Of a stretch of 64,000 nt of DNA, positions 9,216 to 64,000 are shown piece after piece. The stretch's first letter is position 1; every line of letters begins with the position of its first letter. The stretch comes from Zygnema circumcarinatum SAG 698-1b (lineage: Eukaryota > Plantae > Zygnematophyceae). Position numbers and translations under genes: made by a program. The DNA is taken from NCBI GenBank assembly GCA_037447605.1, contig CM074810.1, positions 620,001-684,000 of the forward strand, given 5' to 3'. The notes beneath the pieces were generated by a model, which worked only from the letters and a program-made list of their open reading frames with translations, was not told the origin of the DNA and ran no database searches.

Positions 9216-11833
9216 ACTTCAACTTTTTCATGCATGTTGTTCTATCCCATCCTACCCAATTGACTCAGGCCTTTTTAAACCTCGTCAATACCCTAACACC
9301 TTAAACCCTAAACTCTAAGCCCTAAACCCTACTACATGTACATCCATCCTTCCTTAACAAAAAAATCATGGATGAACAACTTAGTCCCATACAATACATA
9401 GCCTACAAACTACAATTTCTTTCCTTCCTTTCTCTCCTCGTCCTCCCACTGCCCGCTCGTGGTTCTCCGCGGGGACACCCCCGGGGACCCCCCTGTCTTC
9501 CCCGTAAACCCTGCCCCTTTAACGGAGGCATAAACCCTCGGCGTCGACGGGTTCCAGGAGCTTCCCTTCTCCTGGTCCGCCATCGCGGAGGGGGGCCTCA
9601 CCGCCATCGAAATCGGTACAATCCGAATGGAGGCGTTTCCTCTGGGCGACCTTTGGAGGGTCGGAGGCGCCTTGTACTTTTTCAGGTCCCCGTTTGGAGA
9701 TATGGAGTCCTTGGGCGAGAGGTAATCCCCCTTGGATGGGAAGTCCCCCGGAGAGACCAAGTCCCCCGGGGACACCAAACTGCTCGAAACTGGCGATATT
9801 GGAATTGCTCCAAAGTCCCTTCCGCTTCCCGCCTCCTCCCCTTCAGAAGACTCTCCCCCTCCTCCCATAACCCCTCCTCCTCTATACCCTGTCAAAGCAT
9901 CTAAATCAAGCTGTGGAAGGCGGAACGGCCTCGCCAGCTTGGGAGGGGGTTGTCTCCCACTCTTCTCCCTCTCCCTCTCCCTCTCCCTCCCCCTCTCCCT
10001 CTCCTTCTCTCTCTCCCTCCCTCCGTCCTTCCCATCGTCGTTGCGGTTCTCTATGATCATGCCATCCGTGTTTGATCGGACAAACTCGTTCCCCCTCTGG
10101 GGAGTCTCTGACTCCATGGATGGTCTCCTTCGGACTCCTCCAGGAGGCTCTCTCCCTTTCTCTTTCTCCATAGTCGGCTGACTCAGTATGGGGCCCGAAT
10201 GCCACATGGACTCTGCCGGACCCCTCTTTTTGTGAATGGATGCATAGTCATACTTCTCCTCCCCCCCATAGACAATATCCTCCATTCGCGGCGGCGTCAG
10301 CTTCTTCTTCGTCACCTCCCCCTTCGCCTGCTCTTCCATGAGATCTGCTGCCAATCCATTTGCAAACTCCTGCCATGCCATCTGATGTGCAAGCGGAGCA
10401 GGCAAAGTCTCCATTCTGGTAAGCTTCCGAATCTCCCCTGTATCCATCCGACTCAATTTGGGAACCTCCGAAAACTGAACAATTCCCTTGTTTCTCCGTC
10501 CCCATGTCCCCCCCTCCCCCCCTCCTNNNNNNNNNNACTTCAACTTTTTCATGCATGTTGTTCTATCCCATCCTACCCAATTGACTCAGGCCTTTTTAAA
10601 CCTCGTCAATACCCTAACACCTTAAACCCTAAACTCTAAGCCCTAAACCCTACTACATGTACATCCATCCTTCCTTAACAAAAAAATCATGGATGAACAA
10701 CTTAGTCCCATACAATACATAGCCTACAAACTACAATTTCTTTCCTTCCTTTCTCTCCTCGTCCTCCCACTGCCCGCTCGTGGTTCTCCGCGGGGACACC
10801 CCCGGGGACCCCCCTGTCTTCCCCGTAAACCCTGCCCCTTTAACGGAGGCATAAACCCTCGGCGTCGACGGGTTCCAGGAGCTTCCCTTCTCCTGGTCCG
10901 CCATCGCGGAGGGGGGCCTCACCGCCATCGAAATCGGTACAATCCGAATGGAGGCGTTTCCTCTGGGCGACCTTTGGAGGGTCGGAGGCGCCTTGTACTT
11001 TTTCAGGTCCCCGTTTGGAGATATGGAGTCCTTGGGCGAGAGGTAATCCCCCTTGGATGGGAAGTCCCCCGGAGAGACCAAGTCCCCCGGGGACACCAAA
11101 CTGCTCGAAACTGGCGATATTGGAATTGCTCCAAAGTCCCTTCCGCTTCCCGCCTCCTCCCCTTCAGAAGACTCTCCCCCTCCTCCCATAACCCCTCCTC
11201 CTCTATACCCTGTCAAAGCATCTAAATCAAGCTGTGGAAGGCGGAACGGCCTCGCCAGCTTGGGAGGGGGTTGTCTCCCACTCTTCTCCCTCTCCCTCTC
11301 CCTCTCCCTCCCCCTCTCCCTCTCCTTCTCTCTCTCCCTCCCTCCGTCCTTCCCATCGTCGTTGCGGTTCTCTATGATCATGCCATCCGTGTTTGATCGG
11401 ACAAACTCGTTCCCCCTCTGGGGAGTCTCTGACTCCATGGATGGTCTCCTTCGGACTCCTCCAGGAGGCTCTCTCCCTTTCTCTTTCTCCATAGTCGGCT
11501 GACTCAGTATGGGGCCCGAATGCCACATGGACTCTGCCGGACCCCTCTTTTTGTGAATGGATGCATAGTCATACTTCTCCTCCCCCCCATAGACAATATC
11601 CTCCATTCGCGGCGGCGTCAGCTTCTTCTTCGTCACCTCCCCCTTCGCCTGCTCTTCCATGAGATCTGCTGCCAATCCATTTGCAAACTCCTGCCATGCC
11701 ATCTGATGTGCAAGCGGAGCAGGCAAAGTCTCCATTCTGGTAAGCTTCCGAATCTCCCCTGTATCCATCCGACTCAATTTGGGAACCTCCGAAAACTGAA
11801 CAATTCCCTTGTTTCTCCGTCCCCATGTCCCCC
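9216..11833. repeat. 1.32-kb direct duplication across an N-gap (probable assembly artefact)
   Basis: 9216-~10512 appears identical to 10537-~11833 (offset 1321). The second copy starts exactly after the 10-N gap at 10527-10536, and the ORF track repeats with the same offset. Confidence 0.9.
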
Positions 11834-14424
11834 TCCCCCCTCCTCCCCTCCCCTCCCCCTCCCCCTCCCCTCCCACTCCCACTCCCACTCCCACTCCCAC
11901 TCCCCTCCCCTCCCCCTCCCCTCCCACTCCCACTCCCACTCCCACTCCCACTCCCCTCCCCTGTCCCCTCCCCTGCCCCTTCATCCATGAAGTCGGAGAA
12001 CTTGATCTCATATGCTGACCCTTCAAAGATGACTTCTTAGGAAAGACCTGCTTCTTCTCCGACTCTATTGATCGCCATCGAATAATGGACCGGCGAGGAC
12101 CCCCCTCTCTGGGTGACTTGGGGGACCCCGGGTCTAAGTCTCCATGCTCCACTTCTCCGTTACCCATCACATAACTGTCAAACGGGGAACTCACAGAACC
12201 CGTTCTGTGCGTTGCTCCACTGTTCGTTCTATAAAGAGGGAGTCCTGTGAGGGTTGAAAGTTTTTTCAACCACGCTGCCCTTTTCGACCCGCTTGCTTTC
12301 TTGCTGCTCTCCTTTTGTCCTTCCTCCAATTTAAAGCTTTTCGATTGGTCTTTCCTCCCCTTCTCACTCCCCCCCTTCTCCCCTCCCTTTCCCGGTCTAT
12401 TGTACTCTTGCCATCTCACATCAAACTGAGCACATGCCCTATCTACAGCCCAAGCTCTATCATAGATAGTATCGGAAGAGCACCTTGAATCTGATAAAGG
12501 AATTACGTCATTACTTTCTCCCCTTGTATATTTAACCCACATTGCTTCATAGTGGCGGCTGTCAAAGCATGAGCCGCTCTCAAAGGACTTTTGTCCCTCT
12601 CCTGCAGGGTCTGCTTCCTGCATGTATCGCTGCCAACTTGAGTTCGCCATGGCTATGGCGAGAAGGCTCTCTTCCGGACTCGCAGGACGGCCATTCATTC
12701 CAAGAGCACACTCCTTAAGCCCTGCAAAAGGAAAGCAAAAAAACCCAAAACCCACATTCCGCATTATGAATAAAAAACCCTCCAATTTTCAACTTTTTTT
12801 CCACCCATCTAAAACCCCATTCCGGACACTTGCTCTGAATCTCCAGGAGAAGGTAAGTAAGGTTCAACTCGTCCCCTCACCTTCTTCCGTACACAGGGAG
12901 GTTGTCAACCACTGCTTAATTTCCACCACAATTCCCGGCCAGTATTCGGACAAATCCTTCACATCCTTAATCTTGGGAGCGATTTCGTCCTCTTCGTCTA
13001 TGGCCACAACTTTCCACGAAACGCGTGCCACCATCCCCAAAGCTTCAGGCTCCACTAATGCAAAGGCAGAAAGCACCTTCACCGGGTAAACCTCCCCCAC
13101 AGCCGCCTTCCTTGACCCAATTTCTATGACCTCTACTGGAGTTCCGTTCATCGGGAGTCCACCCAAAGTGGAGTTAAACTCCTCCGGATCGCCCCACGTC
13201 TGCGGGAGGAAGCCGTAGTTCCACTTGGCGTTCTCTGCGAAGTGGGCGGCTTTTCCGTTCCGTTCCTGGCGACACAAACGGAGGGGGTTGGCGCGTTCCT
13301 TGGCGGCGACGGACATTCGGACCCAACTGCCGCATGGAGTCGTGCAGACGAAGTTGAATGAGGACTTGGACTGGTAAAGGGGGATGCCTGCATAGGAGGG
13401 AAATCAAAGTAAAATCAAACAAAAAATCAAAATCAGAAGCAAAAGCAAAAGCAAAACCAAAATCAAAATCAAAATCAAAATCAAAATCAAAATCAAAATC
13501 GATCAAAAGGTTGATTCCTAGATTGGTTGATTTCAAGGACGAGGGCTCTTACGTTTTCGATTAAAAGTGTGAGAGGGAACGTGTAGATAATATAGAAATA
13601 ACAACAATAAGAGAGGTAAGATAGATAGAGAGAGATAATAATGTTCAGTTTGCATTCCAGCTCCTTTCCATGATGAGGAGACCATAGAGAAGGAGAGAGA
13701 GGGGAGAGGGGGTGAGAGACAAGGAGAGAGAGTATGAGTGGGAGAGAGTGAGAGAGAGGAGAAACACAGCGACAAGGGGAGAGACAGAGGGACGGAGCTG
13801 GAACTCGAGTTTAGAAAGAGAGCAAAAAACGGATGGGGTGGGAGAGGGGAGAGAGAGAGAGAGAGACAGGGGGGGAAGACCACGAGAAGAGAGGGAGAGA
13901 GGGGGATGCTGCTCGACTCAAAGAGGGAGAGAGAGAGAGACAGCCAGCCAAGAAGAAAACTGAACTTAAAGGAAATAATCACATCGACGAAAGTAGCCCC
14001 CAACCTGCACTCCAACTCCTCCTCGCCCCCACAAAAGCTTAACAACCCCTCTCCCTCCCTCCCCCTTTACCTCCCCCCACAAGAAAAAAAAAAAAAAAAT
14101 TATGGCTGCCCGCGCACCGTGCCAGGGCGACACGTGTTGGCCGCTGGCGTCGAAAAAAAGCACGCGGTGCTTGAGGGAGCCCGGCGCGCCGAAGTCAAGA
14201 GTTCGATACCTGCGGCCGGCGGCGGAAGCAGCCGTGGGGGGGGAGGGGGGCGCGTCGAACGCGGGGGTCGCGCCACGTGGCAGAGAGGGATTGGTCGAAG
14301 ACGCGGGCGAGAGGGAGGCGGTGGGAGAGGTCGAGGGGAGGAGGACGGAGTCGGGGGAGAAGGGCCGAGGGGCCTTGCGGGAGAGAGGGGGAGGGGGGAC
14401 GTCGAGGGGGGGGGGAGGGGCCAT
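10731..14424 (-). CDS. Degenerate PPA6-type soluble pyrophosphatase domain plus long low-complexity C-terminal extension, ~934 aa
   Basis: Exons 14424-14118, 13387-12881 and 12721-10731 join in frame (2805 nt). PPase-like motifs HRVLFFDASGQHVSPWHGIPL, KWNYGFLPQTWGDP, PVEVIEIG, VKVLSAFALV, SWKVVAI and AIAMANSSWQRY. Start codon is tentative. Confidence 0.85.
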
Positions 14425-14960
14425 GGCGGGGGGGGAGGGAGGGAGAGAGGGAAAGGGAGGGAGGGAGGGAGAGAGGGGGGATGTGAAGAAGGAGGGAGGG
14501 AGATGAAACAGAGGGAGGGAGACGGAGAATGTTAGAGGAAAGTAGAGAGAATGAGAACAGATAGAGAGAGAGGGGATGAGAGAGAGGGTGAGAGGGAGAG
14601 AGAGAGAAATAGAACAGGGCCAGGGAGAAGGCGTGACTGTAGAGGAAGGCAGGCAGAAAGAGCCAAAGGCGAGAGAGATAGGAGGCTGAGCGAGAGGGAG
14701 AGGGAGCGGCTGGGTGGGAGCGAGACTGAAGAGAGAGAGGTGAGTGTGGTCGAGAACAAGAGAGAGGGAGAGAGCGAGAAAGAGAGAGAGGAGAGAGAGG
14801 GATAGAGTGAGAGAGAGGGAGAGCGAGAGAGAGGGAGAACGAGAGAGAGGGAGAGAGGGAGAGAAGGAGAGGGGGCTCGCGCACTGGCGAGTATCGAGCG
14901 CTTAAGAGCCGCTTGTCGGCACGCGGGCAGCGGCGGAAGTTTTGGGGAGGGGGGACGCGC

Positions 14961-31247: not shown

Positions 31248-37812
<6,565 letters not shown>

Positions 37813-51740: not shown

Positions 51741-52907
51741 TCACATTCGCTGTTGTGGCAACTGCACCTTAAACATCTTCATAAAAGTAGCGTTCGAAGG
51801 AATAAACAATGTCCCCAGTCTATACTTATGGTGTTCAATCCCAACCTTCACGAGCACCTTGTACCTCAGCTTCAGCCGCTTGTCTAAAGAAAGCATCAAT
51901 GTGGTGGGGTAGCTGGAGACCTCCTCCTTACTACGGCCCATCTCAGTCAATAAAAAGTCGACCTTAGTCTCGATACTATCCCAACACCTGCCAAGAAGGA
52001 AGGGCTGCGCCTGCACCATTTTCAAAGTTGGAAGCTTCCCAAAGCGCTCCTCCAGCTGCTTGTACGTGTTCTCCATTGTAGTCCGCGATACGAAAAGTAT
52101 CTGTGGATTACGTTGCAGCATTTTCTGAGCTATCTCGGGCCCAAAATTCTCCTCCAATCCAGCCACAGCATCCTTGAAGTGATCGCCCTTTCTTTTAACG
52201 ATGCAGGGGAAGGAGCGGAGCACATGCTCTCCTACCTCTCTGGAGAAGGTCGACCTCACAGCCTCGACTCCCTCCCTTATGGTTTCATCTCTGTAGGTTA
52301 GCAGGTTTGGGTAGCTCTCTACCATAGCGCTTGTGACAGGGACCCCTAACTCCTCCCATAGGCGAGCCTTCGCCTCAAGAGTCTGCAAACGGGAGCCTAA
52401 AATCCCCGGCATTGTACCCACAACCTTCCCTAAGTTCTTTACCTTCACAGAGCCCCGCAGGAACTCGAGAATGGCTTGCTGTTTCTCATCAGGAGCGGTT
52501 AAGAAATTGCCTTTCAAGGAGCTGCGTTTTACGGCATTGAAAAAGTCGTTGGAGTTGATCCCCTGGCTCTGGAAGAAGGCAGCTTTAGGGAGGATAAGCT
52601 TATGGACTCTTACAAGAAGACTCGTTTTCTTATCAACGAGAAGGCCGACCTTCTGGTGCGTATATCCTAAGCTCCGGAGAGCGTCCATTGCTTCTTGCAG
52701 AGCCCCCTTCGTCTCCACAGCTTCCTTATCGGCCATGACTTCTCCCTCTGCACTCGCTTTGTGAAGTTGTTTGTCCTCCTCCTTGCTGCTGCTGCAGGCG
52801 TATCCATGGCGCCCTGGTAGCAGATCCAGGGCAGGGTGGCACCATGGGAGGCCGAACGGAGCTCCCTTCCAGACGGTCCGTTGAAAGGGATTAAAGAGAG
52901 ACGCCAT
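51741..52907 (-). CDS. mTERF-family protein, intronless
   Basis: mTERF-like repeats KNLGKVVGTMPGILGSRLQTLEAK, MVESYPNLLTY, MLQRNPQILFVS and EEVSSYPTTLMLSLDKRLKLRYKVL. Likely start gccATGGCG at 52907; the ORF is open back to 53027. Confidence 0.85.
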   Translation of the reverse strand: MASLFNPFQRTVWKGAPFGLPWCHPALDLLPGRHGYACSSSKEEDKQLHKASAEGEVMADKEAVETKGALQEAMDALRSLGYTHQKVGLLVDKKTSLLVRVHKLILPKAAFFQSQGINSNDFFNAVKRSSLKGNFLTAPDEKQQAILEFLRGSVKVKNLGKVVGTMPGILGSRLQTLEAKARLWEELGVPVTSAMVESYPNLLTYRDETIREGVEAVRSTFSREVGEHVLRSFPCIVKRKGDHFKDAVAGLEENFGPEIAQKMLQRNPQILFVSRTTMENTYKQLEERFGKLPTLKMVQAQPFLLGRCWDSIETKVDFLLTEMGRSKEEVSSYPTTLMLSLDKRLKLRYKVLVKVGIEHHKYRLGTLFIPSNATFMKMFKVQLPQQRM

Positions 52908-53635
52908 GGCGGATGTTTGAATGCGAGTCACTGCCTCATATTCTTGAGAAAGCCTCCCTCCCGCAACCTTGCACACTAAACCTGACCCTCCAATTAACCC
53001 TAATCCTAACCCTAAAATGAGCCTCAACCCTAACCCAATCCTAACCCTTACAGTTAACCCTTATCCTAACCCTAAAATTAACCCTAATCCTAATCCTGGA
53101 ACTCGACAATCGGCGTTAGCGTTAGGGCCAGGGTTAGAGTTGGGATAAGGCTTTGGATTAAGGTTTAACGTTAGGGTTCAACTTAGCTTTTCGCTGAACA
53201 TTAGGGTTAAGGTCAGCTTTTTATGCTTTGGATCATATTGTCAACGTTAGAGGAAGGGTTAACTTGATAGGTTAGGCTTAGGTTAGGGATGGCAGTGGTA
53301 GGGCTTGAGTCAAAGTTTAAGGGTTAACCATCCCATCAAAAACAATCACCAACATTCGCATAGTTAAACTCCACATCTGGTTGAAGGCTCCATGGAAGAT
53401 GTCACATGGACGCAATCGCACCAAGTTACAGTTTCAGTTCCAGTCACACTTCCCGTTAGCGCCCTAAAATCCAAAGTAGAATAATTCGAATATTTATAGC
53501 GTTCTGACGCACGTGCCAAAGGGCGAGGCTGATTGGCAGCACGATGATGACTCGGTAGTTTGTAGAATCTGTAATTGGCACAAGCCGTATGAAGCCTCTA
53601 GTCGCAATCAGTGGTACTAGTTCTTTCTTAAGATG

Positions 53636-54206: not shown

Positions 54207-56692
54207 ATGGCCGCGGATGCGGAGTACCGGTGCTTCGTCGGCGGGCTGTCGTGGAACACCACCGAAGAGATGCTGATGGGCGAGTTCCGGGACTTCCAAG
54301 TCACCGAGGCCAAGGTTGGTCGGCGGGCGGCAGGCAGACTAGGGCTGACGTGGCAGGCACTAAGAGCGCAGGGCGGATGTCAAGAGCCTTCGCGGATGTC
54401 TCATCGCTGAAGATGTGACGGCTTCCTTTTGTGTTTTCATGTGGGATGATAGGGAGGTTGCGGGGTTGACACTAGAGCATTTAAGGGTTTCAACTGCACG
54501 ACCTGCGCATGTATATTGATGTACCTATGTATGTACGCATGCATGTGTGGATGCATGTCTTTCGAGCACGATGTGCTTATTTAAGCATGCTGCATGTATG
54601 TATTTGTGTTTATGGCAGGCACTGGCTGTGGATGTATGGATTCATCGTTTATTTATGTACGTATGGGCCGTCTGCCTGATGGATGTATTCATCTTTGTGA
54701 GAGTTTGTATGGGTGTCGTCGGCACGCCTGCACCATACATAACGGGATCATTGTTTGCGTGTTTGCACGCATTGAGGGAGTTCATGCACTGTCTTGTTGT
54801 ACCCTGTGAGATATGATTTAGTGGGATCATTTCACTTTTCTGGATGAATATTTGGAACCAGGCTATGTTGTCTGTGCGTCTGAAACAAGAAGACGCTTTC
54901 TAGTTGGTTGTCTGATATTCTGGTTCTTCTTATTGTCTGTTTTGCTACTTGTTGCGATTGATATGTACACGGATTTCTTCGATGTCAGTATAACCTTGGT
55001 GGGTCGCTTTTCCTCTTCCGTTCTCTCTTCGCGTATTAATTCAGTCTGCTAGAGTTTCAACTGTTATTCTTTGCTTCGCGACCTTCTCAGTATTGCTTTA
55101 CATGTTTAGGGTTAAGTCAAACCTGCTTTGTGGTTGTTGAACCGATTGCTTTGCTCATCCTCAGACTGCATGGCTACTTGCTTCTCCCCGTCGCCCTTCT
55201 CCTTCTGTCCTCCCCTCCTCTTCTATTCTCTCCAACCTCCACTTTTTCTCTCACTTTGCCGTGTTTCCGTGCTTGGTTGCCTTCCTTGCTCCCTGCCCTG
55301 CTTCCGCACTGTTTGAGAACTGTCTCTTCCCTCTCGCTTGCTCGCTCGTGCTCGCTTTCTCTCTCTCTCCGCTGCTTCTTCCGTGCTTGGCTGCCTGCCC
55401 TCCCCCCTCGCTGTCCGAGAAGTGCAGAATTGGAGGGCGACTTCTCCCAGAAGGAACTCTTGTGTGGAGTGCCGCGGAATCCGCAGTGAGAGGATAGAGA
55501 ATTACAAAAAGGAACACAAAGCGCCGATGAATGATGGTCCCACTGTTCGCTACTCGTCGTCATCGTGATGGTCGCATGCGTGGGGAAAAATGAGGACAAT
55601 GCTGAGGCCTTTTTCTTGGTTCGAACGCACCTGTGACTAAGTGACGTATGCAAACAGAGTTTGGGAAGGATAAAGACGAACCCTTTTGCTTGCTCGCATT
55701 GATGCACAAATGGGGAGTGATACACCGAACCACAGCGAACCAGAATGAGACTTGTTGGAACATGGATCTGGTCCGTTGGAAAAGGTCCGAAAAGGGGTTA
55801 AGTGGGAATATGCCTGTTACAAGGGAGCATCGGAATATGGCAATGACTGCAGCCCTCGTCTCATGTTGCCTGATATCTATTTGAAAGGTAAGGCGTCGCC
55901 TCTGGAATCATGCAGGTCAAGCTCTGAAACGAGGTGTGAGGAGGCCTGCTTCCCCGAACCCGATGCTGATATTTGGGATGTAACCTGGACGTGTACTTTT
56001 GCTTCTCCCTTGTGGGAATTGCTTGCATTCAAAGCTGAACATGCCGTTGTATCTGACTCTTTGTGGGTCTTTACTTTCAGGTGATTATGGATCGGGAATC
56101 AGGCCGATCCCGTGGCTTTGGATACGTGACCTTTGCAGACAGGCGATCCATGGATGATGCCATTGATGGTATGAACGGAAAGGAAATCGATGGTCGTGTC
56201 ATCACAGTGAATGTGGCGCAGCCAAGGAGAAGCTCCGGAGGGGGTGGGGAAAGAGGAGGGGGAGGGGGAGGGAGGTATTCAGGAGGAGATCGCTATGGAA
56301 GTAGCGGGGGAGGTGGAGGAGGATACAGTGGAGGAGGGAGTGGTGGGGGCGGAAATGGGGAATGTTTCAAATGCGGACATCCGGGACATTGGGCCCGGGA
56401 TTGCCCCTCTAGTGGAGGAGGGGGAGGACCTTCTCGGAGCTATGGAGGAGAAAGGAGGGGAGGGGGAAGCTATGATGGGGGCAGCCGCCGGGGCGGCAGC
56501 AGTTATGATGGCGATCGACATGGCTCGTCGTCTGGCAAGTATGGATCATCTGATCGTTACAGTGGAGGATCGGACCGTTATGCTGGGAAGTCTGGTGGGG
56601 GCTCTCGGTATGAAAGCAGCAAGGGAGGAGAGCGGGGGGGGCCATACGAGCGGCCGGGCGGAGAGAGTCGGTCGCGCGATGATCGCTATTGA
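54207..56692 (+). CDS. RZ-1: Glycine-rich RNA-binding protein with RRM and CCHC zinc knuckle (RZ-1 type)
   Basis: Exons 54207-54314 (EYRCFVGGLSW) and 56081-56692 (DRESGRSRGFGYVTF, CFKCGHPGHWARDC, G/R/Y/D-rich tail). Confidence 0.95.
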
Positions 56693-60823: not shown

Positions 60824-63800
60824 CTAGGTCAAAAAGCCGGAGCCTTCCCAACCGAGACGCAGCATCTGGTCGACCAGCCGTACACTCAGCTGTTCACACA
60901 TAGCACAGGATTAGGCTATGGGTTGGAAAATCAAGAGGCAAGCACAAGACCAAGGCCTAGATCATCAGCATCAGGATCGAGATCAAGAGATCAAGTTCAT
61001 CTTCAAGATAAACGATAGCATGAAGGTCAATCGATTGATGACAATGTTGAAGGTGGCGATCAAGTTCAAGATTGTACCATGATCAAGATGATGGAGTCTG
61101 AAGGGTACCTGGGGATCTGTGTAGACGAGCAGTTGACCGGCCGACGTGGAACATAGAAGGGCTGTGTTGTCTTCCGTAAGTGCAAGCGCCGTCACGTCAC
61201 ACCCTCGCCCGAGGGGGTAGCGGTACGTCACCTATGAGCCTCCCCTCTCTCATCGTCAGCTTACAAAAAGAACCACAAATGGTCTAAAGCATCGCCATGG
61301 CGGCACTCCGTAACAGCTTGCAAAAGAGGGAGAGGGAGAGGGAGAGGGAGAGGGAGAGGGAGAGGGAGAGGGAGAGGGAGAGGGAGAGGGAGAGGGAGAG
61401 GGAGAGGGAGAGGGAGAGGGAGAGGGAGAGGGAGAGAGGGAGAGGGAGAGGGAGAGGGAGAGGGAGAGGGAGAGGGAGAGGGAGAGGGAGAGGGAGAGGG
61501 AGAGGGAGAGGGAGAGGGAGAGGGAGAGGGAGAGGGAGAGAGAGGGAGAGGGAGAGGGAGAGGGAGAGGGAGAGGGAGAGGGAGAAGGAGAGGGAGAGGG
61601 AGAGGGAGAGGGGAGAGGGAGAGGGAGAGGGAGAGGGAGAGGGAGAGGGAGAGGGAGAGGGAGAGGGAGAGGGAGAAGGAGAGGGAGAGGGAGAGAGAGG
61701 GAGAGGGAGAGGGAGAGGGAGAGGGAGAGGGAGAGGGAGAGGGGAGAGGGAGAGGGAGAGGGAGAGGGAGAGGGAGAGGGAGAGGGAGAGGGAGAGGGAG
61801 AGGGAGAGGGAGAGGGAGAGGGAGAGGGAGAGGGAGAGGGAGAGGGAGAGGGAGAGGGAGAGGGAGAGGGAGAGGGAGAGGGAGAGGGAGAGGGAGAGGG
61901 AGAGGGAGAGGGAGAGGGAGAGGGAGAGGGAGAGGGAGAGGGAGAGGGAGAGGGAGAGAGGGAGAGGGAGAGGGAGAGGGAGAGGGAGAGGGAGAGGGAG
62001 GGAGAGGGAGAGGGAGAGGGAGAGGGAGAGGGAGAGGGAGAGGGAGAGAGGGAGAGAGGGAGAGGGAGAGGGAGAGGGAGAGGGAGAGGGAGAGGGAGAG
62101 GGAGAGAGGGAGAGGGAGAGGGAGAGGGAGAGGGAGGAGGGAGAGGGAGAGGGAGAGGGAGAGGGAGAGGAAGGGAGAGGGAGAGGGAGGAGGGAGAGGG
62201 AGAGGGAGAGGGAGAGGGAGTGGGAGAGGGACCAAACGAAAGCCGTTATCAATTCGTTGGCCATCAATAGCTACACAGAGGAGAGAGAGAGAGGCAGACA
62301 TGCCGATTCCTCACCTTCAAAGTATATATCTCCAAAAGTGCAATGACTGGACCGGTCCGCTCTTCCTTTCCAGCCCCCCCCGGCTTGTCCTGCCAAACCC
62401 GAAAACTGAGCACGTTTCTATCTCCTGAACTCATCCCTTTCCGGGGACTCTCTCTCTCCTCTCCGTTTCGGATGATGTCGGATGAGTTCAAACGGTTATG
62501 ACTGTCGGGCTCTGCTATGCTGCTACTCCTTCGTCGAGCTTTGGGAGGTCCCGCCATGGATGTTCCCACCACCAAATGCAGCCCATTGGCAGAAACAGCC
62601 ATGGCTGCTACATGTCCATCCTCCTCTGCCACTCTCACACTGGCAACCTCCGCTCCGTTAACTGTGACTGCTCGAAGTAGGCGAGTAGAGATGTCCCACA
62701 CTACCACAATGCCTTCGGGAGAGATTGCGAGAGCATCTGCCCTACCCACATGCGGAATTCTCCGCATAACTCTCCCTCCCAGAATGGAGTGAAGAAGAAG
62801 ACCTCCTGATCTTGAAGCAGAAGCAACACAGTCAAGATCAACTGAAACTGCGACACAAGTGACCGCATCTCCATGGCCCCTTAATACCTGCAAAGGACCC
62901 TCCACCTTCTTTCCCCACCTTCTCCCTGTCTCTCCCGACTGGGCAGCTCCCCCTCCTCCTCCTCCTCCCCCTCCCACTCCCACTCCCACACCTCCTCCTC
63001 CTCCTCCTCCCGTCCCCTTCCCTCCATCAGCCATAGCCAAACTATCTCCAGTCGTACCACTCTGCCCTCCTCCACCTCCCCTCCCACCACTCGCAGAGAG
63101 AGAGCTCTCACTACCACCTCCTCCCCCTCCTGTCCCTCCCCCATATCCATGCGTTTTATGCACTCTCCATACGAGCACAGCGGAGTCGGCTCCCCCAGTG
63201 ACCAGTGTGCCCCCATCCTCCGACAGGCCAAGGCACAACACAGGCTGGCAATGTGCCCATATTGACTCCAAAACTCGTGCGGAATCAACAGCAACAACTT
63301 TAACGGAACAGTCCACGTGTCCCCCAGTGAATAAAAACCTTCCATCCAATGAAATACTGCAGATTTCAGCCACTTTTTTCACATTCCTTGCAGGTAAACT
63401 CACAACCTTTGGATACACATTGGGTTCTTCTACAACTCCGCCTACTCCTGAACCGGGAATTGCTCCTCCTTTGAAAATTCGGAGCAGGGCATTCGTTCCC
63501 ACACTTGCAATGGGCTTTCCGGGTTGAAAAAGAAAGGGCCAACCTCTGCCATCCGGAGTGTTTGGCTGCCACTTATGTGTTGCCACGTGGCAAGTCGGCA
63601 CGTTCAGATCAACGGTCACGATCACTTCCTTGGTGGCTAAAATTTTGGCTGCTGGAACATTCAGTCGGTCTCCATGTGGAAGGTTGTACTTCACCATTTG
63701 TGCTGGATAACGGAAAACTGTTTGCAAATGGAGGGCTTCTTCGAGAGCTACTCTCCGAACGTGGGGAGTGGTCAATAGCTGACTCGGAGTTTGACCAAAA

Positions 63801-64000
63801 TAAGCAATTTGATCTTGTGTTGCTTTTCGCATAGTTGGGTTTGTGATGGTATCGATATCGACTGCCCCTTCATATGTTAAGTAAAAGAACAGATTTTGAG
63901 CATTTACAGCCTCTCTCCCTCTCTGCTTGTATCCGAAGATGAGATCGATCCAATGGTGGAGATTCAAGCTCACATACTCACTCTCAAGTGCTGCTCTTTG
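60824..64000 (-). CDS. BEACH-domain/WD40 protein, BChC type (3' part; runs off the window)
   Basis: Exons 64000-62315, 61231-61109 and 60889-60824. Motifs [33 protein letters not shown] and WD40 repeats, ending [16 protein letters not shown]. Confidence 0.93.
61327..62225. repeat. (GGGAGA)n hexamer array, ~0.9 kb, in a BEACH gene intron
   Basis: Continuous GGGAGA units with few interruptions. Confidence 0.95.

Follow-up and report, generated by a model that had tools for sequence, protein, structure and literature searches.

We describe a gene on the minus strand (10731..14424) of a 64,000-nucleotide stretch of the genome of the streptophyte alga Zygnema circumcarinatum SAG 698-1b (GenBank assembly GCA_037447605.1, contig CM074810.1, positions 620,001 to 684,000); this whole stretch is referred to as the window, and all positions are counted from its first letter. 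The gene is, with high confidence, an expressed and correctly spliced nuclear gene for a catalytically dead paralogue of the eukaryote-type family I inorganic pyrophosphatase (PPase). In its product, a preserved PPase barrel that has lost most of its active-site residues is followed by an additional helical extension and a long disordered tail, and we consider it reasonably probable that the dead paralogue serves, without catalysis, as a binding module that carries a docking tail.

Active site and fold of the pyrophosphatase domain

The family I pyrophosphatase domain occupies residues 72-306, its N-terminal strands being encoded by exon 1, its core by exon 2 and its last helices by exon 3. 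Exon 2 alone scores 56.3 bits with Pfam PF00719, for which the cut-off is 23.5 (E 4.1e-15), and its matches in the PDB include the human and yeast PPases (E 4e-20 for 6c45). The active site was read by alignment to these two enzymes and to P0059, a canonical plant-type protein that carries the motifs VVEIP, AKMEV, KLRYY, GDNDPVD, LIDEGELDWK and RDYK. At the 13 positions of the active site, the residues are T R S A Y N T E E S K S L; two (Y93 and K154 in yeast numbering) are kept and 11 are lost (Table 1). In family I enzymes, D117 and two metal ions activate the attacking water, and D115, D120, D152, Y93 and K56 line the site (PMC11210485). The lost residues include this general base and the metal ligands D115, D120, D152, E48 and E58; altogether, five of the seven acidic residues, D117 among them, have become uncharged and the other two (D120 and D147) glutamate, and of the four basic residues that hold the phosphates, two are gone. 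The signature D-x-D-P-x-D is also missing, with N-G-T-P-V-E standing where D-N-D-P-V-D is expected. Because the general base and so many of the acidic and phosphate-holding residues are gone, pyrophosphate hydrolysis is not expected of this protein. A first-pass annotation of this DNA, made by a model from the letters alone, had claimed that nearly all catalytic residues are replaced, and the count of lost sites bears this out. The individual motif changes that it listed (VEIP to CTTP, KMEV to RMSV, LRYY to AAHF, GDNDPVD to MNGTPVE and RDYK to TTSL) were likewise confirmed against the canonical alignments, and the region corresponding to LIDEGELDWK is indeed altered, with a six-residue insert before the WK motif.

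The PPase barrel, in contrast to its catalytic site, is preserved under constraint. In an alignment of 60 dead and canonical domains, 15 columns show an invariance of at least 90%, and the Zygnema protein (the query) conforms to every one of them; the losses fall on the catalytic columns, whereas the fold-defining motifs SPWH, N-x-G-x-LPQTW, P-x-E-V-x-E-I-G, WK and PG...W are common to dead and canonical domains. An AlphaFold 2 (AF2) model of the 168 exon-2 residues, built from a 60-row family alignment, has a predicted local distance difference test score (pLDDT) of 93 and a predicted template modelling score (pTM) of 0.88. When this model was compared by Foldseek with the yeast, human and Toxoplasma PPases (1wgj, 6c45 and 5wrt), template modelling scores normalized to the query (TMq) of 0.83-0.86 and root-mean-square deviations of 1.3-1.8 A were obtained, so that structure prediction, one of the checks proposed earlier, agrees with a retained PPase fold. 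In an AlphaFold model of residues 1-345 of the orthologue P0019 (pLDDT 81.6), the PPase part matches PPases of the PDB with target-normalized scores (TMt) of 0.70-0.84, and helix 230-250 corresponds to the C-terminal helix region at the start of exon 3. The P/S/A-rich residues 1-71 of the query, where a plastid transit peptide would lie, have no counterpart in P0019, its nearest full-length relative, which lacks an N-terminal extension.

The statement that the domain follows plastid PPA6 throughout did not hold. Its nearest kin are dead proteins that are 41-52% identical to it, and its identity to the plant plastid-type representative is only about 36%; since this value and those for the yeast and human enzymes (31-33%) are about equal, the likeness to PPA6 is a generic one. 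Nor does the query group with the canonical plant-type PPases in an unrooted FastTree phylogeny, in which it lies in a clan of dead proteins, apart from the clade that holds the plant-type P0059.

The dead-PPase clan and the disordered tail

The gene is a member of one large clan of dead proteins, each with a long tail of its own. An exhaustive search of 1.84 billion protein representatives gave 1300 matches; among the best 150, about 70 keep no more than six of the 13 active-site residues, and many of these are 400-2000 residues long. In a FastTree phylogeny of 149 domains, 71 dead rows fall on one side of a branch with a Shimodaira-Hasegawa-like (SH-like) support of 99, and inside this clan the query groups with P0019 (880 amino acids) and the fragment P0058 (support 98). 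A single origin is likely, although not proven, because the tree is unrooted and quick. P0058 is the closest fragment (52% identical) and is encoded on L002, an ENA environmental metagenome scaffold, which places relatives of the query's subfamily in sampled natural communities; P0065, encoded by L001, is less than 40% identical in protein to the query, with saturated synonymous sites. The clan members with a named source come only from Mesotaenium endlicherianum and Closterium strains, where they are deposited as unnamed protein products, and the remaining members are unlabelled transcriptome, Logan or metagenome proteins; one member from JGI/IMG carries the name inorganic pyrophosphatase. 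No other Pfam domain was found in the long members.

Several residues set this clan apart: a cysteine before the E48 site, T for I49, W124, R139, H151, N155, E for D120, F211, and W-L after the PG motif. At each of these columns, the query carries the clan's major residue. P0019, with an identity of only about 41%, has the same replacement residues as the query: T, R, S, A, Y in the first five active-site positions, E at D120, and the K of K154. In the clan as a whole, 74% of members retain E58, 44% retain D115 and 81% retain K154, and 69% have E at D120. The canonical W-F-R-x-Y-K has become W-L-R-x-C-x-C in about half of the clan; the query reads W-L-T-T-S-L-C and thus has the second cysteine only. 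Homology within the clan reaches to about residue 365, some 60 residues beyond the Pfam domain, and in this extension the motifs Y-E-x-x-W-x-x-Y-T ... P-L-S ... Y-[DE]-R-A-W are found, residues 333-365 of the query aligning with 13 clan members. The first extension helices (264-282) are confident in the model of P0019, and the rest of the extension is not.

The architecture had been presented as undescribed. Our literature search found no published description of a dead family I PPase or of the tailed clan, which agrees with that claim, but the architecture is not unique, since public unnamed proteins of Closterium and Mesotaenium share the clan. The window's own protein was absent from the protein collections searched. 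Word-index protein searches with the tail and with P0019, both swamped by low-complexity words, and with the first 120 residues of exon 3, for which there were only 77 candidates, came back blank and are uninformative on absence; when the ESM Atlas was searched by features, the domain matched only generic PPase clusters, and the first tail island described below had no match. Outside the dead clan in the tree lie several unnamed proteins with tandem PPase stretches: the NCBI-sourced P0001 (5113 amino acids) has about 20 PPase-like stretches, the best of them with four of the 13 active-site residues, and P0002, P0013, P0036 and P0123 have two to four stretches with 11-12 of the 13 residues kept.

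Beyond the extension, the tail of 569 residues is 73% disorder-promoting, and its mean hydropathy (0.386) lies below the charge-hydropathy boundary (0.429). The C-terminal helix was earlier thought to continue directly into the disordered region; a long disordered tail does follow, but the clan extension intervenes, and disorder sets in from about residue 366. Two islands within the tail are conserved. Island 1 reads F-S-E-V-P-K-L-S-R-M-D-T ... K-L-T-R-M-E-T-L-P-A-P ... Q-E-F and, compared without gaps, scores 40-47 with P0019 (shuffled maximum 40) and 31-44 with P0065 (shuffled maximum 33); K-L-T-R-M-E-T-L-P reads K-L-T-R-M-D-T-T-P and K-L-L-R-M-D-T-M-P in these two relatives. Island 2 reads W-N-P-S-x-P-R-V-Y-x-S-V-K-G-A-G-F (in conserved form W-x-P-S-...). 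Both islands beat every shuffle or 99.9% of shuffled windows, and they occur in the same order in P0019 and P0065. Shorter matches, at residues 464-475 and 690-701, are shared with P0019 only, and K-R-A-A-W-L-K-K (418-425) and R-W-R-S (486-489) were noticed by eye. We dropped a reading of the tryptophan-containing tail motifs as Rubisco-binding motifs, since their spacing does not match that of the Chlamydomonas motif. The motifs of the query's tail were not found in other tails of the clan, and a search for a clan-wide tail motif with reduced-alphabet 6-mers gave none above shuffles (at most five proteins, compared with three to four in shuffles); the tails are therefore subfamily-specific. 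The (GV)n/(GE)n and (ER)n hexamer repeats of the tail resemble microsatellites that are common in the non-coding DNA of this genome.

Gene structure, transcripts and surrounding sequence

The three exons give a spliced coding sequence (CDS) of 2805 nucleotides (nt), or 934 codons and a TAG stop; both introns are GT-AG, the splice phases are compatible and the frame is unbroken, with exon 3 contributing an open frame of 662 codons. Seven public sequencing runs from three studies, all under one species label, contain the stretch, and the contigs of four of these runs were compared with it over 10300-14700. The exon 2/3 joint, for which junction reads at 12881/12721 had been proposed as a check, is present in contigs of four runs from three studies, each of which skips exactly 12721-12879 (+/-1) with GT..AG on the gene strand. 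Contig X1 record 3 (1521 nt) corresponds to 14341..14117, 13386..12880 and 12720..11980 with no other difference, so that a single contig links the first two exons to 740 nt of the third. The existence of such intron-less contigs means that these runs, although not recorded as RNA, hold transcripts, and the earlier description of an intact, spliced gene is in agreement with the frame, the splice sites and phases, and the contigs that join the exons. At low depth, minor contigs retain intron 2 (X2 record 11 and X3 record 19), and with X3 record 20 and X6 record 26 they form a small set that either retains intron 2 or extends 24 nt into intron 1. These low-depth contigs, at 12694-12909 and 13388-13410, suggest that the runs include either unspliced RNA or some DNA. 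The tail is covered by contigs in three pieces (10537-11274, 11359-11827 and 11980-12720), which break at the two coding microsatellites.

Some 160 codons upstream of the ATG at 14424, at about 14904, lies a stop in the same frame; no other start in this frame comes between them, and residues 1-71 contain no further methionine. In contig X6 record 27, 113 nt around this ATG are swapped for 23 other letters; this difference makes both the 5' end and the start codon provisional. The summed contig depth in the CT-rich 5' region (14372-14700) runs into the thousands, as a result of many similar low-complexity loci.

Table 1. Coordinates of the gene and its parts in the window, and residues at the former active-site positions (sites named after the yeast enzyme)
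Feature	Position	Strand	Content and basis
Whole coding region	10731..14424	-	934 amino acids + TAG; in-frame spliced CDS, GT-AG introns, contig X1 record 3
Exon 1	14118..14424	-	Residues 1-71, P/S/A-rich N-terminus; residues 72-102, first PPase strands, to SPWH
Intron 1, 730 nt	13388..14117	-	GT-AG, CT-rich; spliced out in X1 record 3
(AAATCA)n microsatellite in intron 1	13401-13500		Tandem Repeats Finder (TRF)
Exon 2	12881..13387	-	PPase barrel core, residues 103-271; carries the 13 former active-site positions
Intron 2, 159 nt	12722..12880	-	GT-AG; joint 12720/12880 in X1, X2, X3 and X6
Exon 3 start	12618..12721	-	Final PPase helices, residues 272-306; aligns with C-terminal helix region of dead-clan members
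Clan-specific extension, residues 307-365	12441..12617	-	Common to 13 dead representatives, absent from canonical PPases
Disordered tail, residues 366-934	10734..12440	-	G/S/R/E/K/P-rich; composition, charge-hydropathy, open frame
Coding hexamer microsatellite, (GV)n/(GE)n, residues 519-569	11829..11981	-	TRF 11828-11974, periods 6 and 51
Coding hexamer microsatellite, (ER)n, residues 733-751	11283..11339	-	TRF 11274-11340
Tail island 1, residues 572-617	11685..11822	-	Ungapped scores versus shuffles against P0019 and P0065
Tail island 2, residues 883-906	10818..10889	-	Kept in P0019 and P0065 above shuffles
Yeast E48	T118		
Yeast K56	R126		
Yeast E58	S128		
Yeast R78	A150		
Yeast Y93	Y160		
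Yeast D115	N183		
Yeast D117	T185		General base
Yeast D120	E188		
Yeast D147	E215		
Yeast D152	S226		
Yeast K154	K228		
Yeast Y192	S266		
Yeast K193	L267		

At the 3' end of the gene, positions 9216-10525 are a second copy of 10537-11846 on the minus strand (99.77% identity over 1310 nt), and a gap of 10 N at 10527-10536 separates the two. The copies differ by only three mismatches, at 10513-10520, within the microsatellite that adjoins the gap, and the duplicated stretch comprises the 3' untranslated region (UTR) and the last 371 codons. The copy at 9216-10526 is probably an unmerged contig overlap of 1.3 kb, that is, an assembly artefact, and it leaves the protein unchanged. Contigs that reach 10537 carry 38-259 extra letters that do not match 10300-10526, which is consistent with a 3' UTR that runs on in the same way as below 9216. 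In the duplicated copy, an annotator would call a spurious open reading frame (ORF) of 380 amino acids at 9410..10552. The 3' UTR contains two TTTAGGG units and one TTAGGG unit, the plant-type telomere repeat, at 10611-10647.

Elsewhere in the window, at 32269-35306, about 190 copies of GA and GAGAGAGAGGGAGGGA units make up a 3-kb purine-strand microsatellite, whose long ORFs, present in several frames, are artefacts. Three ORFs match ordinary nuclear genes: an mTERF protein at 51741-53027 (-), a protein with an RRM and a CCHC zinc knuckle at 56063-56692 (+), and a BEACH protein with a WD40 propeller at 62264-63973 (-).

A proposed non-catalytic role, its alternatives and known systems

The most likely role that the sequence suggests for this protein is that of a non-catalytic binding and scaffold protein. 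It is expressed, and conserved despite its catalytic losses, which is what defines a pseudoenzyme, the loss of activity itself being predicted. We propose that the remodelled barrel, together with the clan-specific helical extension, would recognize a partner or ligand without catalysis, and that the disordered tail would serve as a docking platform on which the two islands act as short linear motifs. Basophilic plant kinases of the SnRK/CDPK type have the site consensus L-x-R-x-x-S/T, and the consensus of a mode-I 14-3-3 site is R-x-x-pS/T-x-P. The island-1 motif K-L-T-R-M-E-T-L-P fits both, so that partner binding would most likely be controlled by phosphorylation; we put this phosphorylation-dependent mechanism forward tentatively and with some doubt. 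A more far-reaching proposal, which we regard as rather unlikely, is that the barrel, the extension and the cysteine rim constitute a new recognition module and that the clan represents lineage-specific signalling scaffolds, with fast-evolving disordered tails carrying kinase and 14-3-3 docking motifs, that expanded in the algae closest to land plants.

Several points weigh against a binding module with a docking tail. The structure models cover the exon-2 part of the window's protein, the fuller domain having been modelled in the orthologue P0019 instead. The start codon is uncovered by the listed contigs and sits in low-complexity sequence where contigs break, and because contigs also break at both coding microsatellites, a single transcript from domain to stop is not directly seen. 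The fit of K-L-T-R-M-E-T-L-P to the kinase and 14-3-3 consensus sequences is that of a short motif to established consensus forms, and R-x-x-[ST]-x-P occurs about nine times per 10,000 residues in dead-clan tails generally. Furthermore, since no clan-wide tail motif exceeded shuffles, the function of the tail may differ from one clan member to another.

If the domain were instead a regulator or anchor of the live PPase, it would pair with that enzyme or compete for its partners, with the tail setting the site. The retention of the fold and of many surface-forming motifs would suit such a role, and, since animal and fungal family I PPases are dimers, pairing between a dead and a live paralogue is conceivable in principle. 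The plastid-type PPases of photosynthetic eukaryotes, however, are reportedly monomeric; moreover, there are dozens of divergent clan members per genome, more than the regulation of one enzyme needs, and we regard this explanation as improbable. Of similarly small probability, in our view, is a remodelled pocket that still performs chemistry or binds a phosphate ligand, either as a new hydrolase or as a sensor of inorganic pyrophosphate, polyphosphate or inositol pyrophosphate. The preserved K154 and Y93, the conservative change of K56 to R, the clan-wide retention of acidic residues and K154 given above, and the W-L-R-x-C-x-C rim of about half of the clan speak for a pocket of this kind. In the query, however, an uncharged residue stands at five of the seven acidic positions that bind metal or activate water, with T at D117, and E stands at the other two (D120 and D147); the phosphate-holding R78 and K193 have become A and L, and only one of the two rim cysteines is present.

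Decay of the gene and an assembly artefact are two further explanations. A wrecked active site, tail microsatellite expansions typical of the genome's non-coding DNA, and membership in a large family in which some copies may be dying could together describe a transcribed but decaying copy without function. This explanation is already disfavoured and seems to us scarcely probable, since the frame of 934 codons continues unbroken over both introns, which are correctly spliced, the fold-defining residues are kept, and tail islands and replacement residues recur in relatives whose identity is only about 41%. It is also very improbable that the tail, or its last third, has been mis-joined to the domain by an assembly or annotation error at the repeats and the N gap. 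The second copy of 10537-11846 across the gap and the contig breaks at 11275-11358 and 11828-11979 are what such an error might leave, but X1 record 3 spans the domain and reaches 740 nt into exon 3, neither repeat interrupts the open frame, and the islands that follow the repeats are in frame and in the same order in P0019, the protein of a full-length Trinity transcript.

Family I PPase is a textbook housekeeping enzyme, and no described dead branch of it was found in the literature. Here, there is a whole clan of dead copies that are expressed and constrained, and its named members come from the algal lineage that is sister to land plants. If the barrel is a binding module, it would be a new case in which signalling or scaffolding has taken over the fold of an enzyme, and it could serve as a lineage marker for the growth of streptophyte signalling networks. 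A practical warning for annotation is that the name inorganic pyrophosphatase must not be given to PF00719 matches in these genomes.

With the eukaryote-type family I PPases, such as yeast IPP1, human PPA1 and plant plastid PPA6, the protein shares PF00719, the barrel, the SPWH strands and the C-terminal helices. It differs from them in 11 of 13 active-site residues, in the loss of D-x-D-P-x-D, in the six-residue insert before WK, in its extension of about 60 residues and its 569-residue disordered tail, and in its position outside the canonical part of the tree. The unnamed dead PPases of Closterium and Mesotaenium endlicherianum (CAI5463889.1, CAI7923508.1, and Mesen1 ME000420S07042 and ME000124S00201) belong to the same clan; their domains are 39-50% identical to that of the query, and they share the lost sites, the extension and long low-complexity tails. 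These tails cannot be aligned with that of the query, however, whose islands are shared only with P0019 and P0065. Precedents for a fused family I PPase are the trypanosomatid acidocalcisomal or vacuolar soluble PPase (PDB 5cuy and 5cuu) and the diatom ATP-sulfurylase-PPase fusions, but in both the active site is intact, and what has been added consists of folded domains and not of a disordered tail. Pseudoenzymes with regulatory tails, such as pseudophosphatases and pseudokinases, embody the same concept, in which a fold is kept and retained by selection after catalytic residues have been lost, although their folds are unrelated to that of PPase; in plants, the inactivated FAD pyrophosphatase domain of FAD (flavin adenine dinucleotide) synthetase is an example of a pseudoenzyme (PMC9678776).

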